NCBI GenBank assembly: GCA_000708835.1
Contig: DF236967.1
Span: 1 to 64,000 of the forward strand
Source of the DNA: Klebsormidium nitens
Taxonomy: Eukaryota; Plantae; Klebsormidiophyceae
Direction of reading: 5' to 3'
DNA: 64,000 bases
Both the position numbers and the translations under genes were made by a program. The notes beneath the pieces were generated by a model. It saw only the letters and a program-made list of their open reading frames with translations, ran no database searches and was not told the DNA's origin. Position 1 is the stretch's first letter. Every line of letters begins with the position of its first letter. Shown here piece after piece: positions 1-19,800 of this stretch.

Positions 1-2065
1 AGCGGCCGCGCGGGGTGGCGATGACGACTCCGCGGGCGCCACGTCAGGGATCAGGGACTTAGGCCAGGCCGCCGTGGAGGGTTTCGCCAGGTGCTCCGGC
101 ATGGGTGGCGGAGGAGGCGTAAGGAGAGCCTTCTCGGCGGGACGGCTGATGGTGACGTCAGCAGCAAGTGGGGCTGGCGCCGCCGGTGCTGGGGCTGCTT
201 TTGACGTCTTCTTGGTGAGTTGGCTGACGAGGAGCGCGTCGTTCGCCTCCTTCAGAGTGTTTGGCGCGGGCGGCCGCGGTGGCCTTGGCGCCGTCGGGGG
301 AGAGGTGCCGTCCTTCAAGTGTTGCAGGACGGTGGGGAGCTTGGAGAAGTGCTCCGCGAGGCCGACACGTGGCGGACTAGGCGTCCTCTCGAGGTCGAGC
401 ATTTGTGGAGAAGGGGAGCGCATCGGGGGCGCGCTCGAGGGGTCGTAGTCGCCATTGTTGAGGGACGCTTGGAGGTGGTGCTTGACGGTGCGTCCGATGG
501 CGACGGTGTTGGGGCGCAGAGTGCGCGACTGAGACTCCGTGGGGTTGTGGCCGACGTATGCCACGACGGTGTGTTCAGCGCCCTTGCCGCGCTTGAAGAC
601 GCGGGGCTCCGCGGCTGCTTTGCGCAGGGACGTCATGGTCGCCTGGTGGCGCTCCTCGGTGACTGGGCTGCGGTGAGGGCCGGGCGGAGGCGACCTGTTG
701 AAGACTTGAGGCTGATTCGGGGGCGGCTGCCGTCGGTTGGCGCTGAGGTCGCCTGTGGAAGCCGAGCGGCCGCGAGGGACGAAGGGGGACGGGGCGCGCT
801 CGCGGTAGTTGCGACGGGAAGAAGGGGAGCGCCCACGGTGGCGCGGGAGCGACCTGTCAGGGCGCCTAGGCGAAGGAGAGCGCTCGAGGCGACGCTGACG
901 TGGCTCGACGCTCTCCTGCTGACCTTCATCAGACCGCTTTCGCTTGGAGGGGCCTTCGTCAGGGCCAGGAGACCGCCGGTCGCGGCCGCTGCGGTCGCCG
1001 CCACCGCCGCTCGGGCCAGGAGGGGGATCCCTCGTGGAGCGGTCGCCTTGGCCGCGATCGTCGCGGGGAGGCCGCCGCCGCCGCCGCCGGGACCGGGCGC
1101 AGGGGGAGCGCCAACTTGTGTCGCCGTTCCGGACAGCATGCGATGAAGGAAGGCGCTCAGATGGCCCGCCAAGCCGGAGTCGACGCGCGTCGTCGCAGGG
1201 ATGAGCTGGCAGAGTCCCAAAATGATGGGCTGGTTGCCCGAAGGCGCAGGCCTGCCAGAGGGGTTTTGAAGGGGGATGGCGGTGAGCTGGCTGATCAGCT
1301 GGTGGATGTCGCCCCACCTTGGATCCGGGCTTGTGACGGAGAGCGCGGAAACGGACGCCAGGAGTTGGAGGAGCGCGCCCTGGAGCGCGTTTCTCGGGTT
1401 GGCGGTGTCGGCGCTCGACGCGAAGACAGCGGCGAAGTCAGGGGTAACAGTGGCGCTGATGATGGGGGGCTGAGCACGCGGCTGGCGTGAAGGGCGCCGC
1501 GGGGTAGGCCGCGTCGCCGGGGGAGCCGGGTGACGAGCGGACGTGCCGGTCGGGTCCGCCTCAGCGGCCGCCACGTCGTGGATGGGGCCGGCCGCGCGGA
1601 CTGCAGCGCGTCGGGGGGACGTCTCGCGCTCGGTCGCGGGCCGCACCGCCATAGGGGAGGTGTCAGGGGATGCCCAAGGAACGGATGGCTCGTCGAAGGC
1701 GCCAGCGTTCCTCCGGAGGCAGTCCATGACGTAACGTCGCGCCTCCAGTGGGTACAGCGTCTTGACGTCACGGCCGCCGTCGAGGAGGGGGTGACCTGGC
1801 AGCCTGACGTCAGAGAGACGCCTGTTCAGCGCCCACCAGTAAGGGGCGCGCGGCCGCCTCGTCGGCCCCAAGCCGATGATGGCGCCAGCTGGCAGCGGCA
1901 CGTTCCGGAGGATGGCGACCGCCTCGTCGTAAACAAAAAAGCGCGTACGCGCCGTGCGGTTGACGTGGTACTGGCGGAAGACGTACTCCCAGGTCCCGTA
2001 CGGGGCGGTGTGCGCGCGGTCCACCGGGGAGAGGTAGAGTGGGGCTGAGTTGTTGGGGCTGTACA
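1..2065 (-). CDS. Accessory ORF part B (partial at both ends, frameshifted near 1075-1090): Trp/Tyr-rich segment, helical segment, then Gly/Arg-Ser-rich and Pro-rich regions
   Basis: The frame of track ORF 633..2024 is open back to the gap edge (YSPNNSAPLYLSPVDRAH...). A second minus frame is open from 1437 to position 1 and reads PPRDDRGQGDRSTRDPPPGPSGGGGDRSGRDRRSPGPDEGPSKRKRS...RSPSPRRPDRS...MTSLRKAAAEPRVFKRGKG... The most natural switch point is the (GGC)n run. Confidence 0.55.
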
Positions 2066-2821
2066 NNNNNNNNNNNNNNNNNNNNNNNNNNNNNNNNNNN
2101 NNNNNNNNNNNNNNNNNNNNNNNNNNNNNNNNNNNNNNNNNNNNNNNNNNNNNNNNNNNNNNNNNNNNNNNNNNNNNNNNNNNNNNNNNNNNNNNNNNNN
2201 NNNNNNNNNNNNNNNNNNNNNNNNNNNNNNNNNNNNNNNNNNNNNNNNNNNNNNNNNNNNNNNNNNNNNNNNNNNNNNNNNNNNNNNNNNNNNNNNNNNN
2301 NNNNNNNNNNNNNNNNNNNNNNNNNNNNNNNNNNNNNNNNNNNNNNNNNNNNNNNNNNNNNNNNNNNNNNNNNNNNNNNNNNNNNNNNNNNNNNNNNNNN
2401 NNNNNNNNNNNNNNNNNNNNNNNNNNNNNNNNNNNNNNNNNNNNNNNNNNNNNNNNNNNNNNNNNNNNNNNNNNNNNNNNNNNNNNNNNNNNNNNNNNNN
2501 NNNNNNNNNNNNNNNNNNNNNNNNNNNNNNNNNNNNNNNNNNNNNNNNNNNNNNNNNNNNNNNNNNNNNNNNNNNNNNNNNNNNNNNNNNNNNNNNNNNN
2601 NNNNNNNNNNNNNNNNNNNNNNNNNNNNNNNNNNNNNNNNNNNNNNNNNNNNNNNNNNNNNNNNNNNNNNNNNNNNNNNNNNNNNNNNNNNNNNNNNNNN
2701 NNNNNNNNNNNNNNNNNNNNNNNNNNNNNNNNNNNNNNNNNNNNNNNNNNNNNNNNNNNNNNNNNNNNNNNNNNNNNNNNNNNNNNNNNNNNNNNNNNNN
2801 NNNNNNNNNNNNNNNNNNNNN
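2066..2821. other. Assembly gap (756 N)
   Basis: Run of N; the true length is unknown. Confidence 1.
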
Positions 2822-2836
2822 CTGTTCAGCGCCGCT

Positions 2837-4747
2837 TCAGTACATCATGTAGTACTCGATGGAGTTGCATCGGCTGGCGAGGAGCATCTGTGGTCTCCAG
2901 TCGGCTTCTGCAGTGGGGTGATAGTTGCCCATCCACTCGCTGTAGACCACTCGTTGGTGACCTTCAGGGGAGTTGTGGCCCGGCTGGGCCCGGTAGGCAG
3001 CGATGACGTCGAAGAACCTGTCGATGGGGAGGTGTTGTAGGGCGCGGAACTCGATGACGCCATCAGGGACGTCAGCGATGCCGCGGCACATCCAACCCGC
3101 CATCTGGAAGTCGATGGAGTTGAGCCAGAAGTAGTAGTGGCCGGGGGCGAAGTCGTGCGGCCGCGTCACGAATTGGGCGTCCCATGCCAGCTGGCAGAAG
3201 GAGGGCTGGGCTTCCTCCTGGCGCGGGTCGTAGACGTCGATTTTGAGGTGACGCCAGCGGGGGAAGATGTGAAGCTGGAGGGCTGACGTCACCGGGAGGA
3301 GGTTGTAGGACTTGATGCCGGTGGTCGGGCCATAGTCCTCCGCGGGGGTCTGGTTCTTAGACTGGTTGGCAAACCAGTCGGTGATGACAGAGCTGGCGTC
3401 AGCGTACGGGCGCGTCTTCAGCAGTTTGACGACGGTCCCGTCGCCGTTGGTGGTGAAGGTCTTCACGCGGCCCAACTGGAAGCAGTTGATGCCGTGCGTG
3501 TCGTAGTCGCTCCCGTTGTACCAGACAACTAGGTCTGGCACAACCCAGACTTTGTCGGCGGCGAGAATGCCGTTGTTGTAGAAGTTGCGGGAGCGTCCGT
3601 TGAATTCCTCCGGGGTGGGGGCGTGGCGAATGGTGTTGCCCAGCGTCTGCCACGTGCCGCCCTCACAGGTGACGTGGCGGTCTTGGCCTGCGCTGTCGGT
3701 GAAGATGGGGATGTGCAACCCCTGTTCCTGGAGCCACTGGGAGTGGGTGGAATCCATCGCCCCGCCTTCGATGGTTCCATCAAGCTGTCCGCCGGTGTGG
3801 ACGACGCGCCTCTTGCCGTCGTAATCTCTGGCGTAACCGGTGTGGCTGAAGACGTCAGCGGCCTCCTTCCGCAGGGCGTCAGTCTGCTCCATGATTGGGC
3901 CACGTTCCGGGGGGTCCACCAGGGGGTGTTGCTGCGCCAGCCGCCGCAGCTCCTGTTGGATGGTTTCGCCCTGGGCAGCCACCTGCTGGACTGCGGGTTG
4001 GGCCTCCGTGGACGGCGGGGCCGCCGGGAGTGCGGTCGTCTGAGGGGTCGCCGTCGAGGGGGGTCCTTCTGCACCCGGGGCGCCTTCCGCGGCCGCTTCG
4101 CGGCCTTCCTGCACGCCCTGGGCACGTGGCTCCGCGGCCGCCACAGCTCCTGCCCCCGCCTCCTGCTCCTGAAGCGCCTGCGAGCGCCTGATGGCCTGAT
4201 CCAACTCTTCTTCAAACTCGTCCCCCCTACCTGTGCCGCCGAGAGGGATCTCCGGGCGAGGGACCTCCCGCACTTCCTCCTCTGCTGCAAATTCGGGGCC
4301 TCCTTCTTCCAACGCCTCCTCGTCCACCGCCTGGCCCTCCTGGAATGGAATGATGACGTCTTCTGACGCCTCGCGCGCGCGCTCCGGGGGGTCCATCAGG
4401 ACATCGGCACAGACTTTGGTGAGGCCCAAAACTGGCCACAACTGCAGCAGCTTGTTCTTCACCCGGTCATCACCGGCCGCCAACTCGAGCTGCATCACCC
4501 GGTACTTGGGTAGCATCGCCATCAGCTGAGCCGCGTCGGGGGCTCCCTCCATCTTGCTGCAGACTTCCCGAAGGATTTCGATTTCACGCCGCTTCAGCAG
4601 TGGTACGGAGAGCAGGGGCACCGCCTTCTGGGCCGTCGCAATCTCCTCCTCCGTTGGGCCAAATGTCGTTTCGCTGGTGCCGCCGCAGGAAAAGGGGTCC
4701 TCTCCTTCGCTCGGTACCCAGGTGCGGGGCCATTTAGCCGCTGCCAT
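2837..4747 (-). CDS. Accessory ORF part A, 636 aa, unknown function; UIM-like motif plus an aromatic/beta-rich C-terminal domain with a BAH-like segment
   Basis: Uninterrupted ORF with the ATG in CCACCATGG context. It contains EEELDQAIRRSQ (acidic-L-x-x-A-x-x-x-S). No transmembrane segment is visible. Confidence 0.75.
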   Translation of the reverse strand: MAAAKWPRTWVPSEGEDPFSCGGTSETTFGPTEEEIATAQKAVPLLSVPLLKRREIEILREVCSKMEGAPDAAQLMAMLPKYRVMQLELAAGDDRVKNKLLQLWPVLGLTKVCADVLMDPPERAREASEDVIIPFQEGQAVDEEALEEGGPEFAAEEEVREVPRPEIPLGGTGRGDEFEEELDQAIRRSQALQEQEAGAGAVAAAEPRAQGVQEGREAAAEGAPGAEGPPSTATPQTTALPAAPPSTEAQPAVQQVAAQGETIQQELRRLAQQHPLVDPPERGPIMEQTDALRKEAADVFSHTGYARDYDGKRRVVHTGGQLDGTIEGGAMDSTHSQWLQEQGLHIPIFTDSAGQDRHVTCEGGTWQTLGNTIRHAPTPEEFNGRSRNFYNNGILAADKVWVVPDLVVWYNGSDYDTHGINCFQLGRVKTFTTNGDGTVVKLLKTRPYADASSVITDWFANQSKNQTPAEDYGPTTGIKSYNLLPVTSALQLHIFPRWRHLKIDVYDPRQEEAQPSFCQLAWDAQFVTRPHDFAPGHYYFWLNSIDFQMAGWMCRGIADVPDGVIEFRALQHLPIDRFFDVIAAYRAQPGHNSPEGHQRVVYSEWMGNYHPTAEADWRPQMLLASRCNSIEYYMMY

Positions 4748-5522
4748 GGTGGGGTGCTGTAATTGGTGCAGGAGGGATCCTGCTGATCGGGGGCTGTTCG
4801 ACTGGGATGGGAACGATAAGCTAGAGGAGCCAGACGCCAGCGCTATGAGAAGAACGGATTCTGAGATGGGTGTTTTGAGAATGTGGGAATGAGGGAAGCT
4901 GGCGGTTTGGACGAGAGGACGAAGCTACAGAAGGAAGTAAGGCTGTAGCCTCGAAGTGTAGGGGGAGCTAGCTCTAAGAATGGAAGAGTCTACTTTCGGC
5001 AGAGTAGATTGATGGCTGGGCTCCCGGACTTGTCGCGTAGACCCGAAAATGGCGGCGAACCGAACCAATACGAGAGAAAGTTGTCTCGGCCTACTCTCGT
5101 AGCTATCCTCGGGTTCTGACGAATGATTCTGCGGCGTTTGGGCTCTCGGGGAAGCTCTGCAGGCTCCCCGCTGACCTTTGTCAGGTCAACGTTGGGGGTC
5201 AAACTAGTCAACCTTTACTAAATCGAGCCCGCGGGTCTTGGGTCTTTTCCGAGGTTGCAACTATTGGGATTCTACGAGAGCGTCGGGCGTCTGCCTGATA
5301 AGGTTCTATCTGAGAGGAAGTGTCTCCGGTTTCTACTGCTACGAGAGGGCTTACTACTGAACTGGAATCGACTGGGTCTTCCTAGGTGACCTGCGGGGTC
5401 TGCTAACTTTTAAATCGACTAATCCTATTGTCACCGTAGATCGAAACCCTAGCGGTTATGCGCGCGCGTCGACCGGGTTTTGAAGTCGACCGCGTAACTC
5501 GGGGACCGGGCGCGTCGGGGGA

Positions 5523-6700
5523 TCACTCGCCGGCCGCCGGCTCGCGATGTTCGTGAATCAGGGTCACGTGGCGAGTCCAGCAAAGTTGATTGGCGTCCTC
5601 CAGGATGGCGACTTGCGCGTTGTCGTCCATGAAGCCGACGAATTGGTAGGGCCCTTCCCAGCCCAGGTCCAGCGGGTGTTGTTTGCGGGTCTTCCGCATG
5701 ACGACTTTGTAGCCAGGCGCCAAGTTGGACGCGCGGTAAACGCCTCGGTGTTGGCGCTTCTTGAAGGCTTCGATCGCCTTTTGCTGGCGCACGTCCTGGT
5801 TAAAGGCCGCCGCTCGGTAAATCTGCGCCTGGCGGGTCGCGCGGAGTAGGGCGTTAAGCCTCTGTGTTGCCACAATGTCCTCCAGGCAGCGGCCAGTGAC
5901 GTCATCGACCTCCTCGTCGGTGGCCGCCAGAGTGGTTTTGTAGCGCTGGGCGAACAGTCGTTCCACCGGGAGCACCGGGTGGCGGCCGTACACCATGTGA
6001 AACGCCGAGAAGAGGGTGGCGCCCCGCACGCAGATTCGATGAGCGAACAGCAAGTCGTAGAAGTAGCGCGGCCAGTCGTCGCCGTAGCGAGCTTGAAGCT
6101 TGCGCAGCCCCCGCTTGAAGTGCTTGACCGCTGATTTCGCCAGGCCGTTGATCCAGGGGGAATACGCCGGTAGGGGTTGGATGTAAGTGCCTTTCTCCTG
6201 GCACAGGCTTTTGACAGCGCCCACCGAGAGTGCGTTGTCCATGGTGATGACCGCCGGGGAGCCATGATGGCTGAATAGTTCGCGCCGAAGGAAATCCGCT
6301 ACTTCCTCGGTATCATTCCGAGCGCAGAAGGCCGCCAAGGACGTAATGCGTGTGGTAGTCCTCTAGGAGCGCCACGTATCGGTAGCCTTCCTTCGTGGGA
6401 GGAAAGGGGCCCAGCAGATCCAGGCCCACCTTTTCCCAGGGGAGGTCCGTCTCGGTGGGCACCAAGGTCCGATTGTCCGAGCGCTCCGTGGTGGGTTGGT
6501 TCGCCAGCTGGCACAGCGGGCACGTGACCACGTGGTCCGTGATGTCCTTGCCCATTCCGTGCCAGTAGAAGCGGTCGGTGATCAGCTTGCGGGTCTGTTT
6601 GTCGTTAGGGTGGCCGTTTTGGTTATGCAGGTGGTACATAACCGACTCCGCTTCTGCCTTCGTCAGGACGGGCCTTCGAATGGTGTCCGGGGGCGGCGCT
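5523..6700 (-). CDS. Integrase (HHCC zinc domain, DDE core, GPY motif; no chromodomain)
   Basis: HLHNQNGH...CPLC; WEKVGLDLLGP; ITMDNA; NGLAK; GWEGPY. Split by a frameshift near 6318. Confidence 0.92.
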
Positions 6701-8046
6701 TGGTTGGGTTGCGCCTTCGGGGAAGCCAGGCAATAAAGCCGTTCGCCCTCCTGATGGTACATTTTGGATCGGTCGCGGATTTGGCGTCGGAGGTCCTTCC
6801 TTCGGGTTACTGACTCGCTGTGGAAGGAGGGAAGGTAGCCGGTTTTGAGGTAGTACGCCACGTCAATGTCTCCGATGACGTACTCCATCAGGTCTGGAGT
6901 TGGGAAGCTCGACAGGTCGAAGGGGGGTGGGTTGTCGAGTTCGGGCGCCGGCAAAGGGGGGATGGCAGCTTCCGTTGGTTCCGGCGGTACGTTCTTCGAG
7001 AGTTCGATCTCCTGCTGTAGGCCCTGCCGAAGGTGCTGAACAGTGGTCTTCACTCGTTGAAGTGCGTCGGCCGCCGTGAGGTTGGGGTCTTGTTGAACTA
7101 GCGTGAGCGCCACTCGCTCGGTGAGAGTCGCCGCTCTCACCAGGCTGTCGTCCCCTCCATTTCGGTGAAACTTCGCGGCTCGACTCCAGTCGACCATTCT
7201 GGCCTCCGTTAGTGCGTCTAGGTCTGGGAAGGTTGGGGGTGCTGGCGGCAGCTTCTTGGCCTCTTCGTGAGCTTGACATATTTCGAAAATGTCCCAGCCA
7301 AGCTGCGCGTCTAGCAGCTTCACCTCGTCTAGCCTCAGATCCGGGTCCAGCTTCGTTGGTAGGAGGGGTGCTGACGTCAGCGTCGGGGAGAGATCGGCGC
7401 TGTCCGGGGGTCCAGCCTCCGGTGGTGACGTCATGACGAGGGCGGTCCGGTCCTCCAACGCCAGGCGCTTAGTCGGGAGCTCCGTTTGGTCGCCTTCAGT
7501 CTCCGTTAGATTGCGCTTTTCTCCAAGGTTGACAGTCGCTGGGGGCCGCTCCAAGGGAGGTTCGTCCGAGGCGCTTCCCTTCTGCGGCTGTGCGTCCGCC
7601 GCGGGGGCTGCCAGCACCAAGCACGCCTCCGTTTCTCCGTCCGGGTCCGGTTGCTCTGTCGCCGCAGGCTCCGAAGTCGCGGCCGCCAGCGCCTTCGGTA
7701 GGGCTTCCGGTAAGTCTGTGGTGTGCTTCGAAGTCGCGGCCGCCAGCGTTGGTTCTTTTGATGCTGTCACCGCGCGCGTTTGTAGCGCAAAGTCTGGGTG
7801 CTGGGCGGCCCAAAGTCGGTAGGGGACTGCCACAGCTCCGTGTAACGCGCCGGCTGGTTCCGGTAATCGGTCCTTCTCGCCGTATGGAACGGCGGGGTGC
7901 TGCCGGGCCCAGTCCTCATAGCGTATGGTGGGTACACCTCTGTCCCCTTGCAATTCCGAGACGTCCCGGGCTCGGTCAATTGTACAAACCAAAGGTGGAG
8001 TGCCCGGTTGATCTGTGGGTGGGGGGGAGGGAATTCGTGCTTTCCA

Positions 8047-9174
8047 TTAGTCGGTACTGGGCTCGCAGTAGTTGACCGTCGGGGCAGCTTCCACCAGTTC
8101 GCCGCCAAAGTGGGGTTGGTACGTGGAGAAAACGTCGAGCGGGACGACATCGGGTTCCCACTCCGGCAGAGGTGGTGCGGCGCAAGACGTTTCGAATGAG
8201 GGGAGCCAGTCGGGGGCAAAACCGTCTGCCAGAATCATATTGACCTCCGGCAAAGCGGCCTCCGTTTGGAGCTTGCGCGCGCGCGTTGGGCACTCCTGGT
8301 AGAAGTGTCCGGGTCGCGCACAGTCGAAACACTCGCGGTGTTCGAATGGTGGGGGCGCGGGCGCGCGTCGGCGCGACCGTTCGATTGTGAGGACGGTGGG
8401 GGCCTCCGTGTGCGGCAGCTCGCCGGTGGGGAAGCTGGCGTAAGCGGGGAGGTCATCCCAGTCCGTCGGCGGGGGGTCGTCATGGGGGTGCCGGCTTAGC
8501 GGGTCCACGTTGCTGTGAATGCGTCCGGCGCGGTGCACAACGGTAAAGTTGTACTCCATCAGCTTCATGTGCCAGCGCGCCAACCGCCCGGTAAGGTTGC
8601 GTTGTTGGTGAAGATACACCAGCGGGTTGTGGTCCACCCGGCAGGTAAAGGTGGGCCCGCCATAGAGGTAAGGACGAAATTTGACGGTGATGGCCCACAC
8701 CATTGCCAAAAGTTCGCCATCGGTGGTGGAATAGTTAACCTCAGCGCCGTGAAGGGAGCGCGAGGCGAATGCGACCGGGTGCTCTTTCCCGTCCCCGTCT
8801 AGTTGGCTGAGAGCGGCGCCGATTCCGTCGGTGCTGTAGTCGGTGTAGACAATGAATGGCTTCGTCGGGTCCGGCCGCACGAGAATGGGGGCGGTGCAGA
8901 GCGCCTTCTTGAGAGTGGCGAACGCGCGCGCTTGTTCGGGACTCCATTCAAACGCTGTGCCGAGCTTGGTCAGATGATGCAGGGGCTTCGCCGTTCGGGA
9001 GAAGTTGGCGATGAAGTGGCGGTAGTAGCCCACCATGCCGAGGAACGCGCGCACTTCGGAGACGTTAATTGGCGTCATCCAGCTGGCCACCGCCTTCACC
9101 TTCTCGGGGTCCGGCAAAAGCTGGTTTTCGCGGACGATGTGTCCGAGATGTTCGGCTTCGCTCGCGCCGAAGAG
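8047..9174 (-). CDS. RT C-terminus, RNase H, extra CCHC knuckle
   Basis: LFGASEAEHLGHIV...PDPEKV; YTDYSTDGIGAAL; YSTTDGELLA; VDHNPL; CFDCARPGHFYQEC. Confidence 0.92.
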   Translation of the reverse strand, partial: LFGASEAEHLGHIVRENQLLPDPEKVKAVASWMTPINVSEVRAFLGMVGYYRHFIANFSRTAKPLHHLTKLGTAFEWSPEQARAFATLKKALCTAPILVRPDPTKPFIVYTDYSTDGIGAALSQLDGDGKEHPVAFASRSLHGAEVNYSTTDGELLAMVWAITVKFRPYLYGGPTFTCRVDHNPLVYLHQQRNLTGRLARWHMKLMEYNFTVVHRAGRIHSNVDPLSRHPHDDPPPTDWDDLPAYASFPTGELPHTEAPTVLTIERSRRRAPAPPPFEHRECFDCARPGHFYQECPTRARKLQTEAALPEVNMILADGFAPDWLPSFETSCAAPPLPEWEPDVVPLDVFSTYQPHFGGELVEAAPTVNYCEPSTD

Positions 9175-12100
9175 TCATTTGGTTGGGCAAAGTTTCAGGT
9201 TGATGGCCGCCAGTTTGGTGAGGATGGTGTCGAGGGCCTCCAGATGCTTCTCCCAGGCTTCAGTGTGCACGCACGTGTCGTCCAGGTATTGGGTCGCCAC
9301 CGGCTCTGGTCCGTGAATCTCGTCGCTGAGCGTGATGTCCATCACGCGCTGGTAAGTCGCGGGCGCGCCGGTGAGACCAAACGGCATTCGCACGAATCCG
9401 CGCAGACCGTGGTGCGTGATAAACGCCGTCTTGTGGACGTCCTCGGGCGCCATGGGGATCTGCCAGTAGCCGGATTGAGCGTCCAGCATGGTGAAGTAGC
9501 GGGAGTTGCCCAGTTGGTCGAAGATGGCGTCGATTCGGGGCAGGGGGTAGTTGTCGGGCACCGTCACTTTGTTGAGGCCGCGAAAGTCGACGCAGAAACG
9601 CCATTTGCCGTTCTTCTTGCGCGCGAGCACCACGGCGGCGGCGAAGGGGCTCGCGCTGGGGCGGACAACGCCACACGCTTCCATGGGGCCCACTTGCTTG
9701 TCAATCTCCGCCTTTTCCGCGAAGCTTTGTCGGTAAGGTTGCATCTTGACGGGCTTGGAATCGCCGGTGTTGATGTGGTGGGCGAAGCCTTGGACAAGGC
9801 CCAAGTCGGTGGGGTCCCTGGAAAAGATGAGCGCGTGTTTCTCCAGGAGCGCCAGTATTTGCTCGCGTTGGGTGGGCTCCAGATTGTCCGCCAGACGGAT
9901 CTGGGGTCGGACCGCTTCCCAGTGGGTCCGTCTTTCGGCATCGCTGACGTCAGCGTTGGCAGCAGGCGGCGGGAGAACCACCGTGGTGTTGACCTCCGGC
10001 ATTTCGTCCGTCGCTCGGAATGAGTTCGCGAAATCTTGCTGCTCGGCCTCCGTGAGATTAACGATTTGGAAGCCACGCCGCCGGCGAGTCGCGAGCGGCA
10101 GAAGTAGGGCGGTTTCGTCATCCACCGGATGAAGAAGTTCGCCGTAGTGATGATGCTCAAAGCCCTCCGTGTAAAGTTGTGCCAGCATGGCGACGCGGGC
10201 GCGAGGCAGCAGGTTGTGCTCAAGGCTGAAACGAAGAAGACTCCGGGCTTCCGCCAAGGTGTGGAGTAGAATGGCACGGGTGACCGGCTTGCCTGTAGTC
10301 GGGGGCCCTTCCGGCGCTTGGTCAGGCGTGACGTCAGGTAGGGCCTCCGTTTCGCCGTGGTTCGCCGCAGGTGTGCAGCCGCTGGAGCTGTCCGCCGGAA
10401 ACGTCGTCGAGGTAGATTCTGAGGGCTCCGAAAGGTCGGAAGACGGATCGCCTGAGCTGTAGTCTGCAGGCCCGCTGTCGTCGGAGGCCACCTGAAGGCG
10501 CGCCGAAGAAGCCGCTGATGACGTCATAGCTGCGTCAACTGGTGGTCCGTTGGGGTCGGGCTCGCCTCCAGGGCCGCCGGGCTCGTTCTCTGATGGCAGA
10601 CAACTTGGTGCTTCGATTTGATACACCACTGGAACCGTGAGGGTTTGAGCCACATGCGCCTGGTAGATGAGTCCGGTGGGCGCGCCTTGGATCTGGCTGA
10701 CTTCAAGTAGCGGGAGCGAACGCCAAGCCTTCGTCTGGGGAAGCTTGAACCTGAAAAGGTCCGTTGAGTAGTCGATGACGCCGAACATGGCGCGTAGTGT
10801 GCCGACGCCGAGTAAAATCGGGTAGCGGAAGCCTTCCGCCACAATGAAGCGCGTGCGGACGTTGAGGTAGCGTCCGAATCCGACGATCGCGTCCACTCGT
10901 CCGATGCCGGTGCAGTCCGCGCCGTCGGCCACGTTAAAGCGCGCGCCGCCGCTGATGAGTTGCGCCTCTAGTCCCGACCTTCGGAAGTGGTCGGCGCTCA
11001 TCATGTCAACATTAGCGCCGCTGTCAAGCCAAGCGATGGTCCGATGACCGTCAACTCCACCCATTTTAGCGGCCACTTTCGCAATAGAGCGCCGGGGGGC
11101 GTCGGGGTCGACCTCCAAGTACTCTGCTGACGTCGTGATGATTGTGTTGACGGTCTCCACGGCGCGCAACGGGGGCAGCGTTGGGGGGCGTGGTCCGGCG
11201 GGGCGCTCCAACGTTTGTAGCGCTTTTCGAACGGTCGTTTGCAGGTCGCGAACGAGCTGGGGGCTGCCGTGCCGCACCGCCACCGCCATGGGCACCCAGT
11301 CTAAGGGAAAGCTTCCCTGAATGGTTGGCCGGTTTGCCACGTAGGCTTGTGAAGAGGCCTGCCCGCCAGCGTCTCCGGTTGGTTCGCCCATCGGGGGAAC
11401 TGGCGCCTTCGGTGGGGGTTTCGCCGGTCGTCGAGGTGGGGGCGTGGCTTTCGCGTTTACTGCAAGCGGGTTGCTTCCGTGGGGCGCCGGCGGAATCACT
11501 GGCCCCAAGTTGACGGGAAAAGGTTGGCGCTGCGCCGGGAGGAAGCGCCGGACTCCGTCAGCGACCTCCTCAGCAGCGTACACTTCGGCTAGGTGTGCGT
11601 CCTGGACAGTCTCGTCAGCAGCCAGCTCCAAGCTGTCGGCGCCGTCACAGGTGGCGGAGACAGTGTTGACAGAAGCTGGCGACTCAAAATCCGGTGGGGC
11701 TGAGTCGGACAAGTCGTCGTACGGATCGTAATCATGAGCGTAGTCGTCGTCCTCTTCGTGGCACGTGCGGCAGGGGCACTCTCCTTCGATGAGGTTGGCG
11801 CCCTTCTGATCGGAGGGGTGTGGGCACTCTCGTCGTAGGTGACCGGGCTTCCCGCAGCCGTAGCAGAGGCGCGGCTTCCCTTCGTCGCGGCGCTGGCCGT
11901 TCCACGCGGGGCGGCCGCCGTTTTGACCCGCCCTGTTGTTGTTGAACCGATTGTCGCCGCCCCGGTTGTCGCGGTTGTAGCCGCGGTCTGGCTGCTGGCG
12001 CTCGGTGCTGACGTGGCGGTTGTTGTCGGGCTCCGCGGCTGGGGAGTTTGGCTCCAACGGTGGCGGGTCTTCTACGGAGCGCACCATCGCCCGCGGGGCG

Positions 12101-12483
12101 CGCTTCGACTTCTCCTCCACCGTTTCCTTCGGTTTACGGTTTTTCGCCTCGTGGGAAGTCGCCTCGGCCGCCAGGTCTTGTGATTTGACGCGGTAATTGA
12201 GGAACTCTGCGTCCACAATCGCTTGCTCCAGAGTGGCTGGCATCCGGGTGTTGACCTGCGACTTTAGCGGCTCGCCAAGTGCGTTGATGAAGATCGTAAT
12301 CTTCACGTTCTCATCGTTGATGTTGGCTTCAAAAATGCGGTCGCGAAGTCGTTGCGCGAAGTTGAGCAGGCCCTCCTTCTCGCCCATCTTCATACTTTGA
12401 AGCTCGAAGTAGCTCTGCGACGAGTTGACCTTCGCGTAACGCTGTAGGAAAAGTCGTTTGAAGCCCTCCCAGTCGTCCACCAA
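9175..12483 (-). CDS. Gag C-terminal part, aspartic protease, reverse transcriptase
   Basis: CYGCGKPGHLRREC; WLDSGANVDMM; KWRFCVDFRGLN; LDAQSGYWQI; PFGLTGAPATYQR; YLDD. Confidence 0.95.
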   Translation of the reverse strand: MVDDWEGFKRLFLQRYAKVNSSQSYFELQSMKMGEKEGLLNFAQRLRDRIFEANINDENVKITIFINALGEPLKSQVNTRMPATLEQAIVDAEFLNYRVKSQDLAAEATSHEAKNRKPKETVEEKSKRAPRAMVRSVEDPPPLEPNSPAAEPDNNRHVSTERQQPDRGYNRDNRGGDNRFNNNRAGQNGGRPAWNGQRRDEGKPRLCYGCGKPGHLRRECPHPSDQKGANLIEGECPCRTCHEEDDDYAHDYDPYDDLSDSAPPDFESPASVNTVSATCDGADSLELAADETVQDAHLAEVYAAEEVADGVRRFLPAQRQPFPVNLGPVIPPAPHGSNPLAVNAKATPPPRRPAKPPPKAPVPPMGEPTGDAGGQASSQAYVANRPTIQGSFPLDWVPMAVAVRHGSPQLVRDLQTTVRKALQTLERPAGPRPPTLPPLRAVETVNTIITTSAEYLEVDPDAPRRSIAKVAAKMGGVDGHRTIAWLDSGANVDMMSADHFRRSGLEAQLISGGARFNVADGADCTGIGRVDAIVGFGRYLNVRTRFIVAEGFRYPILLGVGTLRAMFGVIDYSTDLFRFKLPQTKAWRSLPLLEVSQIQGAPTGLIYQAHVAQTLTVPVVYQIEAPSCLPSENEPGGPGGEPDPNGPPVDAAMTSSAASSARLQVASDDSGPADYSSGDPSSDLSEPSESTSTTFPADSSSGCTPAANHGETEALPDVTPDQAPEGPPTTGKPVTRAILLHTLAEARSLLRFSLEHNLLPRARVAMLAQLYTEGFEHHHYGELLHPVDDETALLLPLATRRRRGFQIVNLTEAEQQDFANSFRATDEMPEVNTTVVLPPPAANADVSDAERRTHWEAVRPQIRLADNLEPTQREQILALLEKHALIFSRDPTDLGLVQGFAHHINTGDSKPVKMQPYRQSFAEKAEIDKQVGPMEACGVVRPSASPFAAAVVLARKKNGKWRFCVDFRGLNKVTVPDNYPLPRIDAIFDQLGNSRYFTMLDAQSGYWQIPMAPEDVHKTAFITHHGLRGFVRMPFGLTGAPATYQRVMDITLSDEIHGPEPVATQYLDDTCVHTEAWEKHLEALDTILTKLAAINLKLCPTK

Positions 12484-14052
12484 GTTCGCGCCGGTCAGCT
12501 GGTAGTACTTGGTGTCCTCGGTGAAGTACCAAGACTCCGCTGCGTCTTGTAAATTGGCGGCGGCGGTGGTGACGAGCTGCGCGTTGGTAAACCCGGGGTA
12601 GCCCGCCTCGTCATTTCAAAACGCGAGATAAAATCTCGCGCGCGCCGGCCTTCTTCTTCGATGGTCCCTTTGAAGGGCCTCCCAATCTTCTGTGCCTGGA
12701 AGATTTTGTGGGGTGCTTGGGGATTCTCCGAGGGCGGCGCTGGCCCATAGCTGGGAATCGGGGGTCCGTACATCGCCTGCAGCCCTGGGGGGCCGCTGTA
12801 CGGAGCGCCGGGTCCGTGGCTGTAGATTCCGGTGGGGGCGTAGATGTATGCACCGTTCCGGCTGTCCGTTGGGGGGTGCTGTTGTGCGCCATAAGGACCG
12901 GCCATCGGGTAATGGGCGCCCGCCGGTGGTGGCGGCTGGTAGGGGGTCTGAGACGTCACGTAGCCGGGGTTGGTGTAAAACGGCGAGGATGACGCCGAGG
13001 GCGCGCCTGGGGGAGCCACAGGGGGTCCGCCAGCGCGTCCGTACTGGCCGGGTGGCACCGCGGTTGGGTTGAACGGAGCGCCCGGGTTCAACGGAACGCC
13101 ATATGGGTGCTGCTGAACCGGCGGTTGGTACTTGGGGCCAACAGGTGGTACACCGTGGTTCTGGTACGCGTGGTAGCCTGGGCCCATCGGTGCTGACGTG
13201 GCAAAAGGTTGGGCTGGCGCCGGTGGTGGCGCAGAGGCGGCTGCGTGGGGGCTTCCTCCTGAAGACTCCAGGTTTGGTTGGCCGGTGGAGGCGTAAGCGC
13301 CAGAATGACCAGCGTGGAACGCAGGCGCCATGGTAGGAGGGACCTCCGAGGGTATTCTGGTCGCCGGAAAGGTCGGCTGATGATACACCGCCGGTCGGGG
13401 CCCTTCTGGCGCCACGTTCTCGCCGTTGGCGTGGCCGTAAGTAGGGGGCGCTCGCGAGGGGGTGCCTGCTTGGTTGAACGTCACGGAAGCGTGTTGTTCC
13501 GGGGAAGAGGGCCTCGGTGTGGTCTGTCCCCTTGCAACTCCAGGCACGGGGGACGTGGCAGGGGGTGCCATGGGGTGCTGCACAGAGGGTCTTCCGCGGG
13601 TAGCTTGAGTGACGTCAGGTCCGCGGTAGGCGGCCGGCCCACTGCTCCTCAGCTCGGCGGCGCTCCTCGGCTTCCCTGGTCCGCTGCTGAGCTGCTTGCT
13701 GTTTCAGGTACTTGGCAAAACGTGTGATCTCGTCAGGGGTGAGATCCACAAACTCCCCCTCTGCAGGTGTGGTTCCGGTGACGTTGGAGGGGCCTGCTTC
13801 CTGCGAGTGGGCCTTTCCTCGGCGGAGTCTCTCTGCTTCGGACAGGCCCTCCTCCGGTGGGGGTCCTCCGCGAGGAAGTGGGTCTCCGGGGGGGTCCACT
13901 GCGGGGCTTCTGGGGGGTGTTGAACCTCCAGGAGGCTCTTGGTCAGGGGGATCCGCCAACGGAGAAGCAGGGGGGGTGTGCTCCCGCTGTTGCTCCGGTC
14001 CCTGATCGCCAGTGTTGTCCCTTCTGCGTCCGCGGGTGCCGGGGCCCGCCAT
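12484..14052 (-). CDS. Gag N-terminal Pro-rich region and start of capsid-like domain (frameshifted)
   Basis: Re-framing gives ...EQWAAAYRGPDV... and ...FISRFENDEAGYPGFTNAQLVTTAAANLQDAAESWYF...DDWEGFKRLF, typical of a retrotransposon gag core. Confidence 0.75.
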
Positions 14053-14101
14053 GTTCCTTTGCTAAAAGCTCAACACAAAGCAATTCCGAAGAATCCGGCC
14101 C

Positions 14102-14112
14102 CTCTGATACCA
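14102..14112 (-). other. Primer-binding site complementary to the initiator tRNA-Met 3' end
   Basis: The minus strand reads TGGTATCAGAG, the canonical plant iMet PBS, located between the LTR-like region and the gag start. Confidence 0.8.
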
Positions 14113-15094
14113 GGAAGACCACCGGAACGCTGAGACCACTAGCAGACCAAACTGCGCACCACCGCTAGCGCTCACTTCCGTATGGCTCAGAGTTATACTA
14201 ACCCACAATTAACCGTCAACGTAACTCAACGCAGAGCTACAGACAAGCTAACTATCGATTAGCAGGCAGCGGAATGTAGCGTGGGGCCCATGCAAAGCTA
14301 ACATGACAAGTGCGATATTACCGAGAAATATCGCACGAGGGAGTGTCCCATACCACTCCAGCTAGCAGTCATGTGAAGTAACAATCCGAGACAAACAATT
14401 ACAACTTGCGTAAGCTCACCACTGGCAGTGTCCCCGTAGAGTGGATCATTGTGCATTCACCATGTTGCAACACTGTGCATTCGCGGTGAAGTCCGAACTG
14501 GCTCAGAACCGAGCGGTGAAGCTGAGGCGAGAGGGTACGAGGCTGAGATCGTCAATTACGAGACTTAAGGCGTCTCGAGGGGGCCTGACAGGCTTACACC
14601 TATACAATGCCGGCAGACTGCCAGCCAAACGCTACGGAGACAAGTGTCTCTAACGAAAGCTACTAGAAGCAAGCGCCTCTCAAAACAAGCAACCAAACAA
14701 GCAACAAGTTCAATTGTGTCTACTCGTGCTAGCGTCTTACGAAGACTACCCGAACGTCTTCTTCCTGCGCTAAGACCTACTGTCCTGGTGGTACTCCGAA
14801 ACGCTAAGTCTTCGGGGCACCACTTCGGCTCGACCAATAAGCGATCAGAGTATCTTTCTACGAGTGGTTCTGCGCGACCCAAATCTATCGGACGACTCCA
14901 AGGACTAGTGGTCTTCATCGCTACCGTCAGCGACTGAACCCCACTGATTCTAACAATGACAACACTATGACATCAGCGGCGGCCGCCTAAAGCCTGCTCG
15001 CGCGCTTACTCGCGTATAACTATGGCTACGCGACCGGTGGTGTCGGACACTAGGTGGCTATCTCGGGGCACTACAGTATTCGTTGGATCTAACA
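14113..15094 (-). repeat. Probable 5' LTR (about 980 bp)
   Basis: Non-coding block between the PBS and the compositional boundary; begins TGTTAG. The 3' end lacks the usual CA, and the partner LTR is not in the window. Confidence 0.6.
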
Positions 15095-16874
15095 TCTTAA
15101 GGCTTAATGATATTTGATGAAGCATCTTTGAAGTTTGGAAATTGAACTTGTACAACGTTCCGACGCACATGATAATAATTGGCATTGGTAATATGGTAAT
15201 AATACAAATCGATTGAGTTTATACGTGAGCAATCAGATGTAAGTATCTACGTAGTAAAATAGATTTGTATCATGCACGAGTTGGATCAATACAAACATCT
15301 ACTTTCGTGCGGTCATTTGGGAAGTTCGGCACATTCAACATGATTTCAATATAAGATTGTCGGCTATTGCAAACACTGATGTGTTAGGTCTAAACTTTAG
15401 TAAGTGGATTGTTGAATATCTTCCAACTTCAACGGTTCAAATATTGTTTCAAGCTTGTCAAATCCTCCGTACGAAGGGTCAAATAGACTTCGAGATACCA
15501 TTTGCATATCACGACTAAGAAGCATGATTCAACGTAGCATCGATTGAATAGCAAATACCCCTTTTCACAATAAAATATATGGAGATACAAAATCCGGGAT
15601 TTATGCTTGGTAGATGGGTGTGTTTTCGGGGTACCGGCCGTTCGGTGGGGTTGATTGAATGCGGGTTCCATGCCCGTTTATCGGGTGGTTTTCCGGGGTT
15701 TTTGAAGATGCATAGAAGGCACCAACTCTCTTCGACAAAGTGCAAAAACCCGGCATTGGGCCTTCATTATGGGTGAATTTTCGGGGTTTGCTGTTCGTTG
15801 GTTCGTGGCCACATTACAGTTTGTACCGTGGTACATACCTACTACCGAGGAACAAATATTGAATTCCCGGAATTCTACCCGGGATTCGGCCCAATTTCGG
15901 GGTACCATATGCCCGGTTGGTGATTCCGGCGGGGCCGTGGGGGCTAGCACTAAAGCTGATGACGTGGCAGATCCGGCCGAATTTAGACACATTTATTGTT
16001 TTACGCCGACCGACCGACCCGCCCCCGAAGGGGGTGGACCGGAAACCCCATATCAAATTCGCGTAGCCTAATAGAAGTATAGCAGCTAGCAAATATGCCA
16101 GAAGTGAAGATACCGCATCAACGCGTTCAGGCTCATCGACGCATATAATGATATACTCGATGCCCGGCCAGGACAGATCGTAATATCATTGTCAACCTTA
16201 TCTACGCCACTAGCTAACGAGAGAACTTCCAGCATGACGGTATCCAGTCTTAAGCACGTCGCACATGCATGCAACTAACTGATTAGTGCTTTGAAGTTCT
16301 CTTTTGACTGTAGAGGATTAGTCACAAATTTTCGTTTAGTCCGCTTGAAGGTAGCGCGGGCAATATAGCACCTTGCAATATTTAGTGGCCTAAAACTCTC
16401 AAAATTACAGCCGATTATAAGGAGCAGAAATAAGATTCCGTACAATCCAATCATCATAGTTACAAATGATCTTTGCACCAATACAGTCAATACAGAGTCA
16501 CCTGCAATCGTCAATTGTCTCTCTGAATATCACCTTCTTAAAGTATTTTGGATACTTGCGTCTCTCTAGACCTAAATTGTGAAACAATCGGATACCTCCA
16601 TCGGCGGACAGTTAACCTAGAAACTTTCTGGTCCCCTAATTCAACAATAGAGACCCGAAGACCTCTCGACTCCTTTCAGAAACAGCTATTCATACACTAC
16701 TTGATCTTCTCTTGCTCTGTTGGCCTTTCGACAACATGTCCCTCTCGGAACGACAACTGAAAGGAGACGGAGTAGGACCCGACTCCTACTCGGCGCCTTC
16801 TTGAACTGTGCATATCGTACAAATTTGATAAAGTCGAATCTCGTGTCTCAAAAGGCTATCGTCCAGTTGTGCGG

Positions 16875-19800
16875 TTACCAAACTCCCAAGTAATTACCGC
16901 GAAGACCAAACGGCAAAGGGCCACCTGAAGAAGGTCCAAAACAAAGGTTGATCGTCAAGCAATTAGCCAGGACTTGATGGACTTTGACGTGGGCCAGACA
17001 AGCAACCCAGGCGAATTTTTCTAAGGAGCTCGATGGTTTGTTCGAACAATTATAATGCACACAGTCTATGAGACGCGACCTCAGCTCCTCGAAGTTGGTC
17101 CTCAGCTCCCAGAGTCCCATCAAGCTGCTTTTGTAAGGTAGTAACAAAGCAGGAGGAAGTTAAGCTATTCTCACCAGCGACCAGCATTTTAGTCCCCGAA
17201 GGATCATACGCATGAGAATAGATTGCGTGCTTGACGTTCTGGCCCCGAAAGTGCTGGTAATATACGTCGTTGTGCTCCTGCATTCGGAAGTTGCGGTCAG
17301 CCTCCTACATGAAACGAGGGCTAGACAAGCAAATCGCAAGCAATCATGTCCTTCGTCCTGGAATCTCTCATCCGTGCGCATAAAAGCGAGTGCTATAAGG
17401 CCCTTGCGTAGTAAACGTAGACGAATGAACGATGAGAAGGACACAAAGAAGCTGCCATAAAGAGGTGAAACCAGAAGAGGGGGGTATTTGTGTCTTACTA
17501 GGGCTCCTTTTCCGGTTTCGAAGTAGTACGACTCGGAAGGCTTTTTTCCCGAGGCCAGCTGCTCTGCGCCTTCCGGGCCCCCTGCACAATGGTGGATGTT
17601 GGCCGGGACACTCACTTGAACAACTCGAGTGTCCTCGGCTTGAAATGCAGCCAGGCAACGCACGGCGGACGGGTCACTTTCGCTTACGGATCCACGACTT
17701 CGAACAAGGTTGCGAGCTGTGGCTTGCACTTTAATATTCATCTCAGCTGGTTATAGTCATCCGAGATTAATGACTGACAAGGCAAGCGTCTTTTACCGAA
17801 CGTGCTTCCTTTCGGTGCTCTAGCACAATCGGATCTGTCAATACGACGCAACTTACGAAGGGGCAAGTACTTGAGGGTTCGCAAATCCAGGAATGATAGC
17901 CGCCCCTTTCCACCGCCTACGCTTAGGATGTCGCCTTTGAATGCAAGCGACCGGATCCCTGCGGAGAAGAACGATAAGATTGCGTCGCGTCCAGACGAGC
18001 CGCCTGTATTCGTTTCGGAAAAACCACTGTCTCTCGAACCTTGCGAGTGGACTCTTGTGGAGAAGCAAAGCGGGAAGAAGAGCGTCAGACTCGGTTTGAG
18101 GACGAGGATAAACACAGTGGCCCGTCGTATCATGGGGCACGTACCCCATCCTTCGTCGAGAGACTCTACAGAGTGCGCCACGTGACCACAGCGCATGTCG
18201 ACGAACGTGACGTGGTTGGCTGATCCGATGGCGGCGAGCGGTTGCATTACGGCCAAGGTAACCAGCTCCTTCTGGTACGGAAGCTTCACCGTCGTAATCT
18301 GTGGGAGATTAAAGGCAGTGTTGCAGGCTTTTTGAAGCAAGTCCAATGAGGCAGCAGGCGGCTTGTTTCAATCCGCACAGCTTTCTCTGATTTGGCAGAG
18401 AACAGCTACAATGCGCAGCAGTGTTCGGCTTTGCGGTTAGAGTGTGATACCTTCAAGGCAAAACAGCAGTCACACCAGTAGCGTTAACATATATCGTAGT
18501 CCACAGTTTGTGCTGAAACTTACCGACTCCATCACGTGAGGATCCCAGATCCTGAGTGTGCCATCTTGGCCCAGCGTCAATAGTTGCTGCATGTAGGCAA
18601 CGTGTTCAGTTAAAGCTGGATGGTGGAATTTTGAAACCGAGGCCTGGAAAGGACGAGGACGTCAGCTAAAACTCCAGAGGCCCGAAGCAGAGACAATGAG
18701 TACAAATTGAACTACTCATTGGGGTCAGCTGTATTAAGACGGCCGAATTCGGGTGTTAGATCCAATGGCTCATGACAAGAATGGAGCAACCAGATTTCAT
18801 TCTCTGACAATGAAACCTTTCTATTCAAGTGCTTACCTCTTTTTCAGCAGAGTAGCCTACATCTCGAACCTTTCCCCGATGATCTGCCCTCGATGCTTTT
18901 GGCTGTGTGTTCACAAATTTCCTGCCCGCTCGACAACTCCAAAGTTTTATGGTACCATCCCGAGAACCTGTGGCAATCAAATGACCGCAAGATTAATATA
19001 CCAAAACCTCCTCGAATTCTGCTGACCACAGCAAGTTAGAGTCAATCACCATGAATCGAAAGGCATCAGACATCTGGGTCAGAAAATGGTTCGAAGGACA
19101 AAGATGCTCGGCTGAAACAGTAATCTGCACAAGGACAATTCAACCCTCCAACATGCCGCTATAAGCGCGGAGGCATACCTGATACCAGCATGCTGTCAGT
19201 AACCCAGGCCGTTCCAAAGAGCCAGTCTTGATGTTTCTGCAGAGCAGATTGTTTGGGTGCTTTCAGGGCCATCTGATACAAACAACATCCATCTGTACAG
19301 AGGCCACAAGCACATGTACGCCAGTTTTGAACCTCAAAGACGGAGTGAAACGAACACGCAGATGTAAGGATTGACCTACTAGAGATCAGGCAAGCAATGA
19401 AATATTTACACTGATCCTTGATTCCAAGCTTTCCTGCTTTGGATGGAGTTCAAAATGAGCCCTGTTCATACGAGATTCAACCATCGACATTCCGTGCAGC
19501 AGAAGTGATGTAGAAATCTTGTTCAATCTAGCACATTGCTTGAGAATTGCAATGGAGGCACTTACAGATAGGACCTGCAGCGGTTCAAATGTTGGAAGCT
19601 TGAAGATTGAAATGTCATTTGGATCAGCGCCACCAGTTGCCAGCAAAGTCTGAGAGGCATTGATGGATCTGCAAGAGAGAATCGTAGGGTCTCCCATGGT
19701 GGACCTTCTGGATTTGCAGACTGCCGCCATGTGATGTCTAGCTCCTGGCTGTCCGCATTTTTGGAACTCCTTTGGTCACCGTACAGCTGTTAAGAGTCAT

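Follow-up and report, generated by a model that had tools for sequence, protein, structure and literature searches.

Extra genes lying behind pol are common in the long terminal repeat (LTR) retrotransposons of the plant lineage, and almost none of them has a known fold or function. Open reading frames (ORFs) that stand there in sense orientation make up a recognised class, aORF-3S, whose functions are mostly unknown (PMC7264820). Chromoviruses carry a chromodomain at the C-terminus of the integrase, the proposed idea being that integration is tied to chromatin state by a histone-methylation reader which the element itself encodes (PMC3350952). For Ectocarpus, a 2025 report described a gypsy element with a Tudor domain at the C-terminus as the first transposable element to possess such a domain (PMC12477816), and Klebsormidium nitens itself hosts KnitGypsy-Dnmt3, in which a DNA methyltransferase sits within the pol of a gypsy element (PMC5890265). 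Here we describe an accessory gene in the first 64 kb of K. nitens scaffold DF236967.1 (positions 1-64000, the whole stretch analysed and called the window below), where a GC-rich Ty3/gypsy retrotransposon runs on the minus strand from 14.7 kb to position 1. The gene belongs to a family of LTR-retrotransposon accessory genes that is new and confined to one lineage, and its product is predicted to contain a tandem module of Tudor/Agenet-like type. We put at about one in two the probability of what we consider its best explanation, an accessory gene of a gypsy lineage whose Tudor/Agenet-like core acts as a reader or adaptor.

Position, orientation, conservation across copies and the lack of similarity to known proteins are what this gene shares with the aORF-3S of plant Ty3/gypsy elements (PMC7264820), from which it differs in not being env-like, in its much greater length (~1,300 codons) and in a predicted fold of Tudor/Agenet type. 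The highest 19-residue Kyte-Doolittle mean is at most 1.43 in the window ORF and in the related proteins P0001, P0005, P0006 and P0007 (related proteins, loci and sequencing runs are cited by P, L and X numbers), and no membrane segment or signal peptide was found in them. With no segment at the hydrophobicity of a membrane span the product is not env-like, and this together with its Arg/Ser-, Gly/Arg- and Lys-rich tail suggests that it is probably nuclear.

That the protein is borne by a retrotransposon, as the first-pass annotation of the window had claimed, is upheld by its place in several loci. In L004, L006 and L008, as in the window, gag, reverse transcriptase, RNase H and integrase are followed on the same strand by a homolog of the accessory gene, and L001 is a partial case that begins 22 nt after the equivalent integrase stop. 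The window integrase is 62-77% identical in amino acids to those of L004, L006 and L008 and, again as first annotated, has no chromodomain (Pfam). LTR sequence lies on the outer side of the gene as well: window 14109-14325 matches L001:6917-7133 at 85% identity and window 14483-14735 matches L004:21448-21705 at 74%, and in both of these loci the matching stretch is downstream of the accessory gene. The homology with L001 ends where the primer-binding site begins, a site (TGGTATCAGAG) that we take to be of the initiator tRNA-Met type, as in plant LTR elements. Since LTR sequence stands upstream of gag beside the primer-binding site in the window and downstream of the gene in L001 and L004, the accessory gene lies inside the LTRs, between integrase and 3' LTR. 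A search for direct repeats in window 1-16000 returned no LTR pair, because the 3' LTR is beyond the start of the scaffold.

The 636-codon ORF first annotated at 2837-4747 on the minus strand is present, but its end is not the end of the gene: the stop at 2837 lies in inserted DNA beside a gap of Ns (2066-2821). P0001 and P0002 (= KFL_009310020), which were found with residues 285-636 and are 53-56% identical, both extend past the window stop, and their continuation matches a window ORF at 633-2024 beyond the gap. In the DNA alignment window 2843 adjoins L002:2491 and window 2061 adjoins L002:2494, the homologs being collinear across this point. A 5,625-nt contig from a related organism (run X5, ~95% identical) runs from 5600 to 2840 and then directly from 2060 to 600, with five shared letters at the joint, and GTACA stands both at 2061-2065 and at 2840-2844. 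This contig joint and the GTACA duplication show that 2066-2839 was inserted and supplies the stop codon. Contigs of the window's own organism (X1, X3) support 2822-2839 and reach 9 nt further into the gap, and other copies in that genome read straight on, like the relatives. We estimate the insert at ~775 bp, a size that a solo LTR would fit; the 18 nt of its readable end (…GCCGCTTCA) have no other occurrence in the window or in the loci fetched. A frameshift between about 1131 and 969 precedes the tail in the window copy, and the tail frame from 1098 to 1 is 56% identical to residues 888-1168 of the L002 ORF. Intact relatives P0006 and P0007 encode 1,293-1,294 residues, and intact frames of about 1,290 codons are present in L003, L007 and L008. 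The window ORF thus covers the opening 636 of the roughly 1,300 codons that make up a sense accessory gene, and all searches and folds reported here used the pieces of this broken copy separately.

Read across the break, the protein begins with a conserved region of ~135 residues, followed by an acidic and then Pro/Ala-rich linker, domain A (~360 residues), domain B (~110 residues), a helical domain C and the tail rich in Gly/Arg, Arg/Ser and Lys. Near its start (residues 6-19, window 4690-4730) a W-x-P-x-x-G-x-[DNS]-P-F motif is kept in all seven copies that can be aligned; this motif resembles NPF/DPF trafficking motifs. Domain B contains 12 invariant columns (alignments A4 and A5), and AlphaFold2 models domains B and C as a small alpha/beta domain and a helical bundle (residues 20-120 at pLDDT ~90). 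Structure searches with these two domains (VIA, Foldseek) gave only generic helical matches, domain B being effectively outside that test.

The family is narrow and under constraint. A profile search of 1.84 billion representative proteins recovered 16 true relatives, all unnamed and drawn from K. nitens or assemblies in ENA and Logan, plus one spurious bacterial match; none of the 16 has a Pfam domain, no relative was found outside Klebsormidium-like sequences, and our literature search found no account of this gene family. A word-index protein search with the full ORF had no match because the low-complexity N-terminal half swamped the query, whereas residues 285-636 returned two relatives; nothing usable came from querying the ESM Atlas by sequence features. 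For L001 and L002, the closest pair, the ratio of nonsynonymous to synonymous substitution rates (dN/dS) is 0.22-0.25 at a dS of 0.36-0.44; it is 0.3-0.46 for the window against either of them and 0.2-0.47 for other pairs, where dS is near or past saturation. The coding sequence is under purifying selection, and neutral evolution, which had been named beforehand as counting against the first-pass proposal, is not what the ORF shows (dN/dS 0.22-0.46).

These data bear on the possibility that the gene is a mere passenger, either a captured and diverged host gene without a role in the life cycle of the element or a chance ORF in GC-rich DNA. Its lack of a known family, its long low-complexity linkers and an evolution faster than that of pol would suit such an origin, which we nevertheless hold to be very unlikely, as the same position is kept across element lineages that differ by 25-40% in pol, frames of ~1,290 codons stay intact in three loci with dN/dS well below 1, and no host-like homolog emerged from the 1.84 billion proteins searched.

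AlphaFold2, run on residues 280-636 (domain A) with 15 family sequences, returned a model (pLDDT 81.4, pTM 0.82) with a helical front part and two barrels, at about 3281-3550 and 2840-3175. In Foldseek searches of the PDB, chains with tandem Tudor or Agenet domains (53BP1, UHRF1, SGF29, ADCP1/AGDP1) took four of the first five places and most of the list, the UHRF1 tandem Tudor domain (TTD) reaching a probability of 0.97 and a TMt of 0.61. An independent wide VIA search, all against all over 48,161 chains, placed Agenet 1-2 of NtAGDP3 first (Z 6.2), with the UHRF1 TTD at Z 6.1 over 128 residues and 3.5 A; AGDP3, FXR1 and FMRP were also among the first (range Z 5.0-6.2, 104-129 residues aligned), and nearly all remaining matches were single Tudor, KOW or other small beta-barrel domains. 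In a second VIA look the UHRF1 TTD and AGDP1/ADCP1 led, most of the chains being 131-150 residues long, with SAWADEE, SGF29, BAHCC1-TTD and SETDB1 lower down. In the ESM Atlas, searched by shape, the leading clusters were Agenet and SGF29_Tudor, and the BFVD library of viral structures held no informative match. In the predicted model, then, two SH3-like barrels are packed as in a TTD or tandem Agenet module, and both are aligned together by the matches.

The two SH3-like barrels of the accessory protein are placed relative to each other as in the tandem Tudor of UHRF1, the tandem Agenet domains of the H3K9me readers AGDP1/ADCP1/AGDP3 and that of FMRP, superposing over 124-138 residues at 3.5-5.3 A and Z 6.0-6.7. 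The protein differs from these readers in sequence, with 5-9% identity and no profile match, and by long insertions, with one helix separating the barrels and others within barrel 2, as well as by an additional helical region of ~120 residues in front. In barrel 2 a cluster of aromatic residues is strongly conserved (motifs YYFW and FQMAGW). We speak of a predicted pair of Tudor/Agenet-like barrels in domain A, in which an aromatic cage is only putative.

The first-pass annotation had seen barrels at these places and read them as one or two BAH domains which, coupled with a ubiquitin-interacting motif (UIM), would join ubiquitin binding to histone reading as in DNMT1-type systems. Its two segments, nt 3403-3547 and 3039-3152, do fall within the model barrels (model strands 128-168 and 259-282), and as the range matched by known structures (model 112-357) covers both stretches, that reading had picked out real barrels and named them wrongly. 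BAH is classed as an SH3-like barrel in SCOP. The BAH assignment is wrong: no BAH profile match appeared at E<=10 in the ORF, in the segments or in 15 family members, whereas a host exon of 43 residues in the same window (59641-59769) scores 8e-8 for BAH in Pfam; and no BAH chain occurs among the best 50 matches of the Foldseek-PDB search and of either VIA search, or among the ten Atlas matches. The likeness to the host BAH exon noted by eye amounts to 7 identities in 22 residues (18.5 bits), and tblastn of the ORF against the whole window did not match that exon at E<=10. Another tblastn match (E 0.15) linked residues 424-472 to 48853-49029, which is no part of the BAH gene, and we set it aside.

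The UIM half of that proposal is a pattern match. The motif (EFEEELDQAIRRSQALQE, residues 177-194) does have the L-x-x-A-x-x-x-S pattern after an acidic run (EEE-L-DQ-A-IRR-S), within the acidic linker. L001 and L002, with N-terminal regions that share 39-49% identity with that of the window, both retain it inside an otherwise poorly conserved linker. In P0007, P0014, P0015, P0016 and L003, where the linker is not alignable, it is absent. Pfam UIM (PF02809) gave no match at E<=10 with the whole ORF or with 41-residue cut-outs of the window, L001 and L002, phmmer against the PDB gave none for the motif, and the position after S-x-x is a Leu where the UIM consensus has an acidic residue. By our estimate the bare L-x-x-A-x-x-x-S pattern is expected by chance ~0.3 times per protein of this length and composition. 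From its sequence pattern the UIM call is weak, and the motif would be at most a feature of one sublineage. With its BAH part largely refuted, the coupling of UIM and BAH reading strikes us as highly improbable.

Two other functions could be served by a protein of this layout. One is RNA handling: a tandem Agenet-like module with Gly/Arg and Arg/Ser tails, as in FMRP, might act in export, packaging or condensates of the element RNA, like CERV of Cer1 or retroviral accessory proteins. No other listed chains are as similar in sequence (14-15% identity) as the tandem Agenet chains of FMRP and FXR1 (Z 5.0-5.4); P0001, P0007 and P0011 contain G/R-rich stretches and RS-rich regions; and an accessory RNA-export protein is reported for an LTR element (PMC10309623). 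Histone readers outscore FMRP, however, Pfam found no RNA-binding domain in the ORF or its relatives, and the tail is of low complexity and poorly conserved, so that we regard an RNA-handling factor as a rather unlikely alternative. The other is that domain A is a papain-like cysteine peptidase or isopeptidase of CHAP/NlpC-P60 type, with candidate residues Cys361 at a helix start, His418 and Asn421, which could act on ubiquitin-like modifiers. In the model C82 stands directly before helix 84-95; 11 of 13 aligned sequences share this Cys, 14 of 15 have a His at H139, and N142 hardly varies. The Cys and the His are 57 residues apart, a spacing like that of CHAP, and CHAP entries recur at low rank in three libraries. 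Against this stand Foldseek probabilities of 0.03-0.08 with TM at most 0.32, no CHAP or NlpC chain among the best 50 VIA matches, the change of Cys to Thr in P0013 and P0014 and of His to Leu in the intact P0007, and a third residue only three positions past the His, unlike usual triad geometry. We consider a peptidase very unlikely.

Turning back to the accessory gene with a Tudor/Agenet-like core, several observations weigh against it, and our estimate is even odds. All structural matches are middling (Z <8, which by the tool's own warning possibly reflects only a common arrangement), and none from Foldseek-PDB reaches E<=1e-3. No sequence profile links the protein to Tudor, Agenet (PF05641), TUDOR (PF00567) or any other Pfam family, and an hmmsearch of the family profile against PDB sequences found no Tudor or Agenet chain. 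Barrel 1 has an invariant W130 and lacks aromatic residues at beta3-beta4, the expected cage positions. Amino-acid divergence of the accessory protein is ~3x that of integrase and reverse transcriptase in the same element pairs, which could mean weak constraint. Among the sequencing runs none was confirmed as RNA, so that expression of the gene is only putative, and L003 holds an intact accessory gene without pol.

Given these data we propose that the product would serve as a reader or adaptor of a non-chromoviral Ty3/gypsy lineage in Klebsormidium-like algae. The ligand bound by the barrels would be methylated, most probably a mark of silent chromatin on a histone tail; the other conserved domains would hold components of the element, and the whole might steer integration or interfere with host silencing, the two roles that the first-pass annotation had suggested as well. 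From the model, a chromatin-reader role is plausible, though a minority expectation on our part. A sharper version, in which a stand-alone tandem Tudor/Agenet reader of H3K9me-type marks in a lineage without a chromodomain aims integration at heterochromatin, or competes with host readers of the UHRF1/AGDP1/SHH1 type and so blunts silencing, with a ubiquitin-binding helix added in one sublineage, appears to us rather unlikely.

The proposed logic would be that of the chromoviruses, with the difference that the integrase here has no chromodomain, the reader-like module sits in another protein and targeting is only proposed. With the Ectocarpus element the Klebsormidium lineage would have in common that a gypsy retrotransposon bears a reader module of the Royal family which is not a chromodomain. 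The Ectocarpus Tudor domain is C-terminal on an element protein, recognisable by sequence and found in a stramenopile host, whereas the Klebsormidium module is tandem, a sequence orphan, encoded by a separate gene behind pol and found in a streptophyte alga; it would be an independent acquisition. KnitGypsy-Dnmt3 shares the host and the principle of a gypsy element with an acquired chromatin or epigenetic module under purifying selection, its methyltransferase being inside pol, whereas the window element has no DNMT domain (Pfam). If our reading is true, this alga would have a further chromatin module, acquired independently, in a gypsy lineage other than that of KnitGypsy-Dnmt3, which would strengthen the view that its gypsy elements interact with the epigenetic machinery of the host. 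The barrel pair would also be the second Tudor-type module borne by a transposable element after the brown-algal one of 2025, differing as a tandem module in a separate gene. For the accessory gene itself, the extent is now defined, a family is known, selection is evident and a confident model points towards a module of histone-reader type.

Table 1. Features of the retrotransposon and its accessory gene in the window (DF236967.1:1-64000).
Feature	Coordinates	Strand	Basis or remark
5' LTR	14113..14735	-	3' end well defined; 5' start unmapped
Primer-binding site TGGTATCAGAG	14102..14112	-	read in alignment directly after end of LTR homology
gag (zinc knuckle) + aspartic protease + reverse transcriptase	9175..12483	-	Pfam RVT_1 4e-24, zf-CCHC, gag-asp_proteas
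RNase H part of pol	8047..9117	-	Pfam RT_RNaseH 6e-36
Integrase (H2C2 zinc domain + core), split by frameshift near 6320	5523..7992	-	Pfam Integrase_H2C2 3e-14
58-nt conserved block directly after integrase stop	5444..5501	-	86% identical to L001:7-64
Accessory gene, N-terminal conserved region, residues 1-135	4343..4747	-	alignment A3 of eight copies
UIM-like motif in acidic linker	4166..4219	-	sequence pattern
Accessory gene, domain A, residues 280-636	2840..3910	-	AlphaFold2 model and structure searches
Inserted DNA (N gap 2066-2821 + 18 nt), GTACA 5-bp target duplication on both flanks	2066..2839	.	contigs, homolog collinearity
Accessory gene, continuation: domain B + helical domain C	1131..2060	-	tblastn to uninterrupted L002 ORF
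Accessory gene, tail (Arg/Ser-rich, basic runs)	1..1098	-	open frame, runs off scaffold start

The remainder of the element is decayed in this copy (Table 1). The frame holding gag, protease and reverse transcriptase closes at an in-frame stop, RNase H follows in the same frame with that one stop between them, and a second in-frame stop ends RNase H; these two stops and the frameshift in the integrase mark the window element as a decayed copy. At 6670-7992, between RNase H and the integrase zinc finger, ~440 residues have no Pfam match. Between 600 and 5600, 66 differences from related copies in run X11 comprise 45 C>T and 18 G>A, the pattern expected of methylated-cytosine deamination in silenced repeats.

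A spacer of 775 nt separates the integrase from the accessory ORF. The 58-nt block directly after the integrase stop is more conserved between the window and L001 than their coding parts are (86% versus ~70%), contig depth in run X11 rises at 5443-5600 and contigs of another sample diverge exactly at 5444, so the block may be a junction where different cassettes follow a common pol end. The public gene model P0022 (window 1-6242; 1,530 residues with predicted introns) apparently fuses the end of the integrase, the accessory gene and sequence across the gap, and is not to be taken as a host gene; L005, the locus obtained from it, is window 1-16242 reversed and identical.

Other loci gave observations of their own. 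In L003 an intact copy of the gene (P0006, 1,293 residues) lies without gag-pol in 2585-10286, between the two units of a 149-bp direct repeat (2585-2733 and 10141-10286), and an LTR-like piece at 2725-2901 also flanks the accessory gene; two Logan contigs of other runs begin a single base past the P0006 ATG and end 85 nt after its stop. This copy may be a non-autonomous derivative, and when L003 was considered as an LTR-ORF-LTR derivative of a spliced mRNA no primer-binding site and no clear junction were seen. In L004 the accessory gene of the related element is split by a nested chromodomain gypsy element (12503-19490), which has 580-bp LTRs that are 90% identical and a primer-binding site at 13082. 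Beside the accessory gene in the ENA contig of L002, an ORF at 4970-5977 on the minus strand encodes a Replitron HUH endonuclease domain (PF21859, 6.7e-18) and probably belongs to a neighbouring Replitron transposon.

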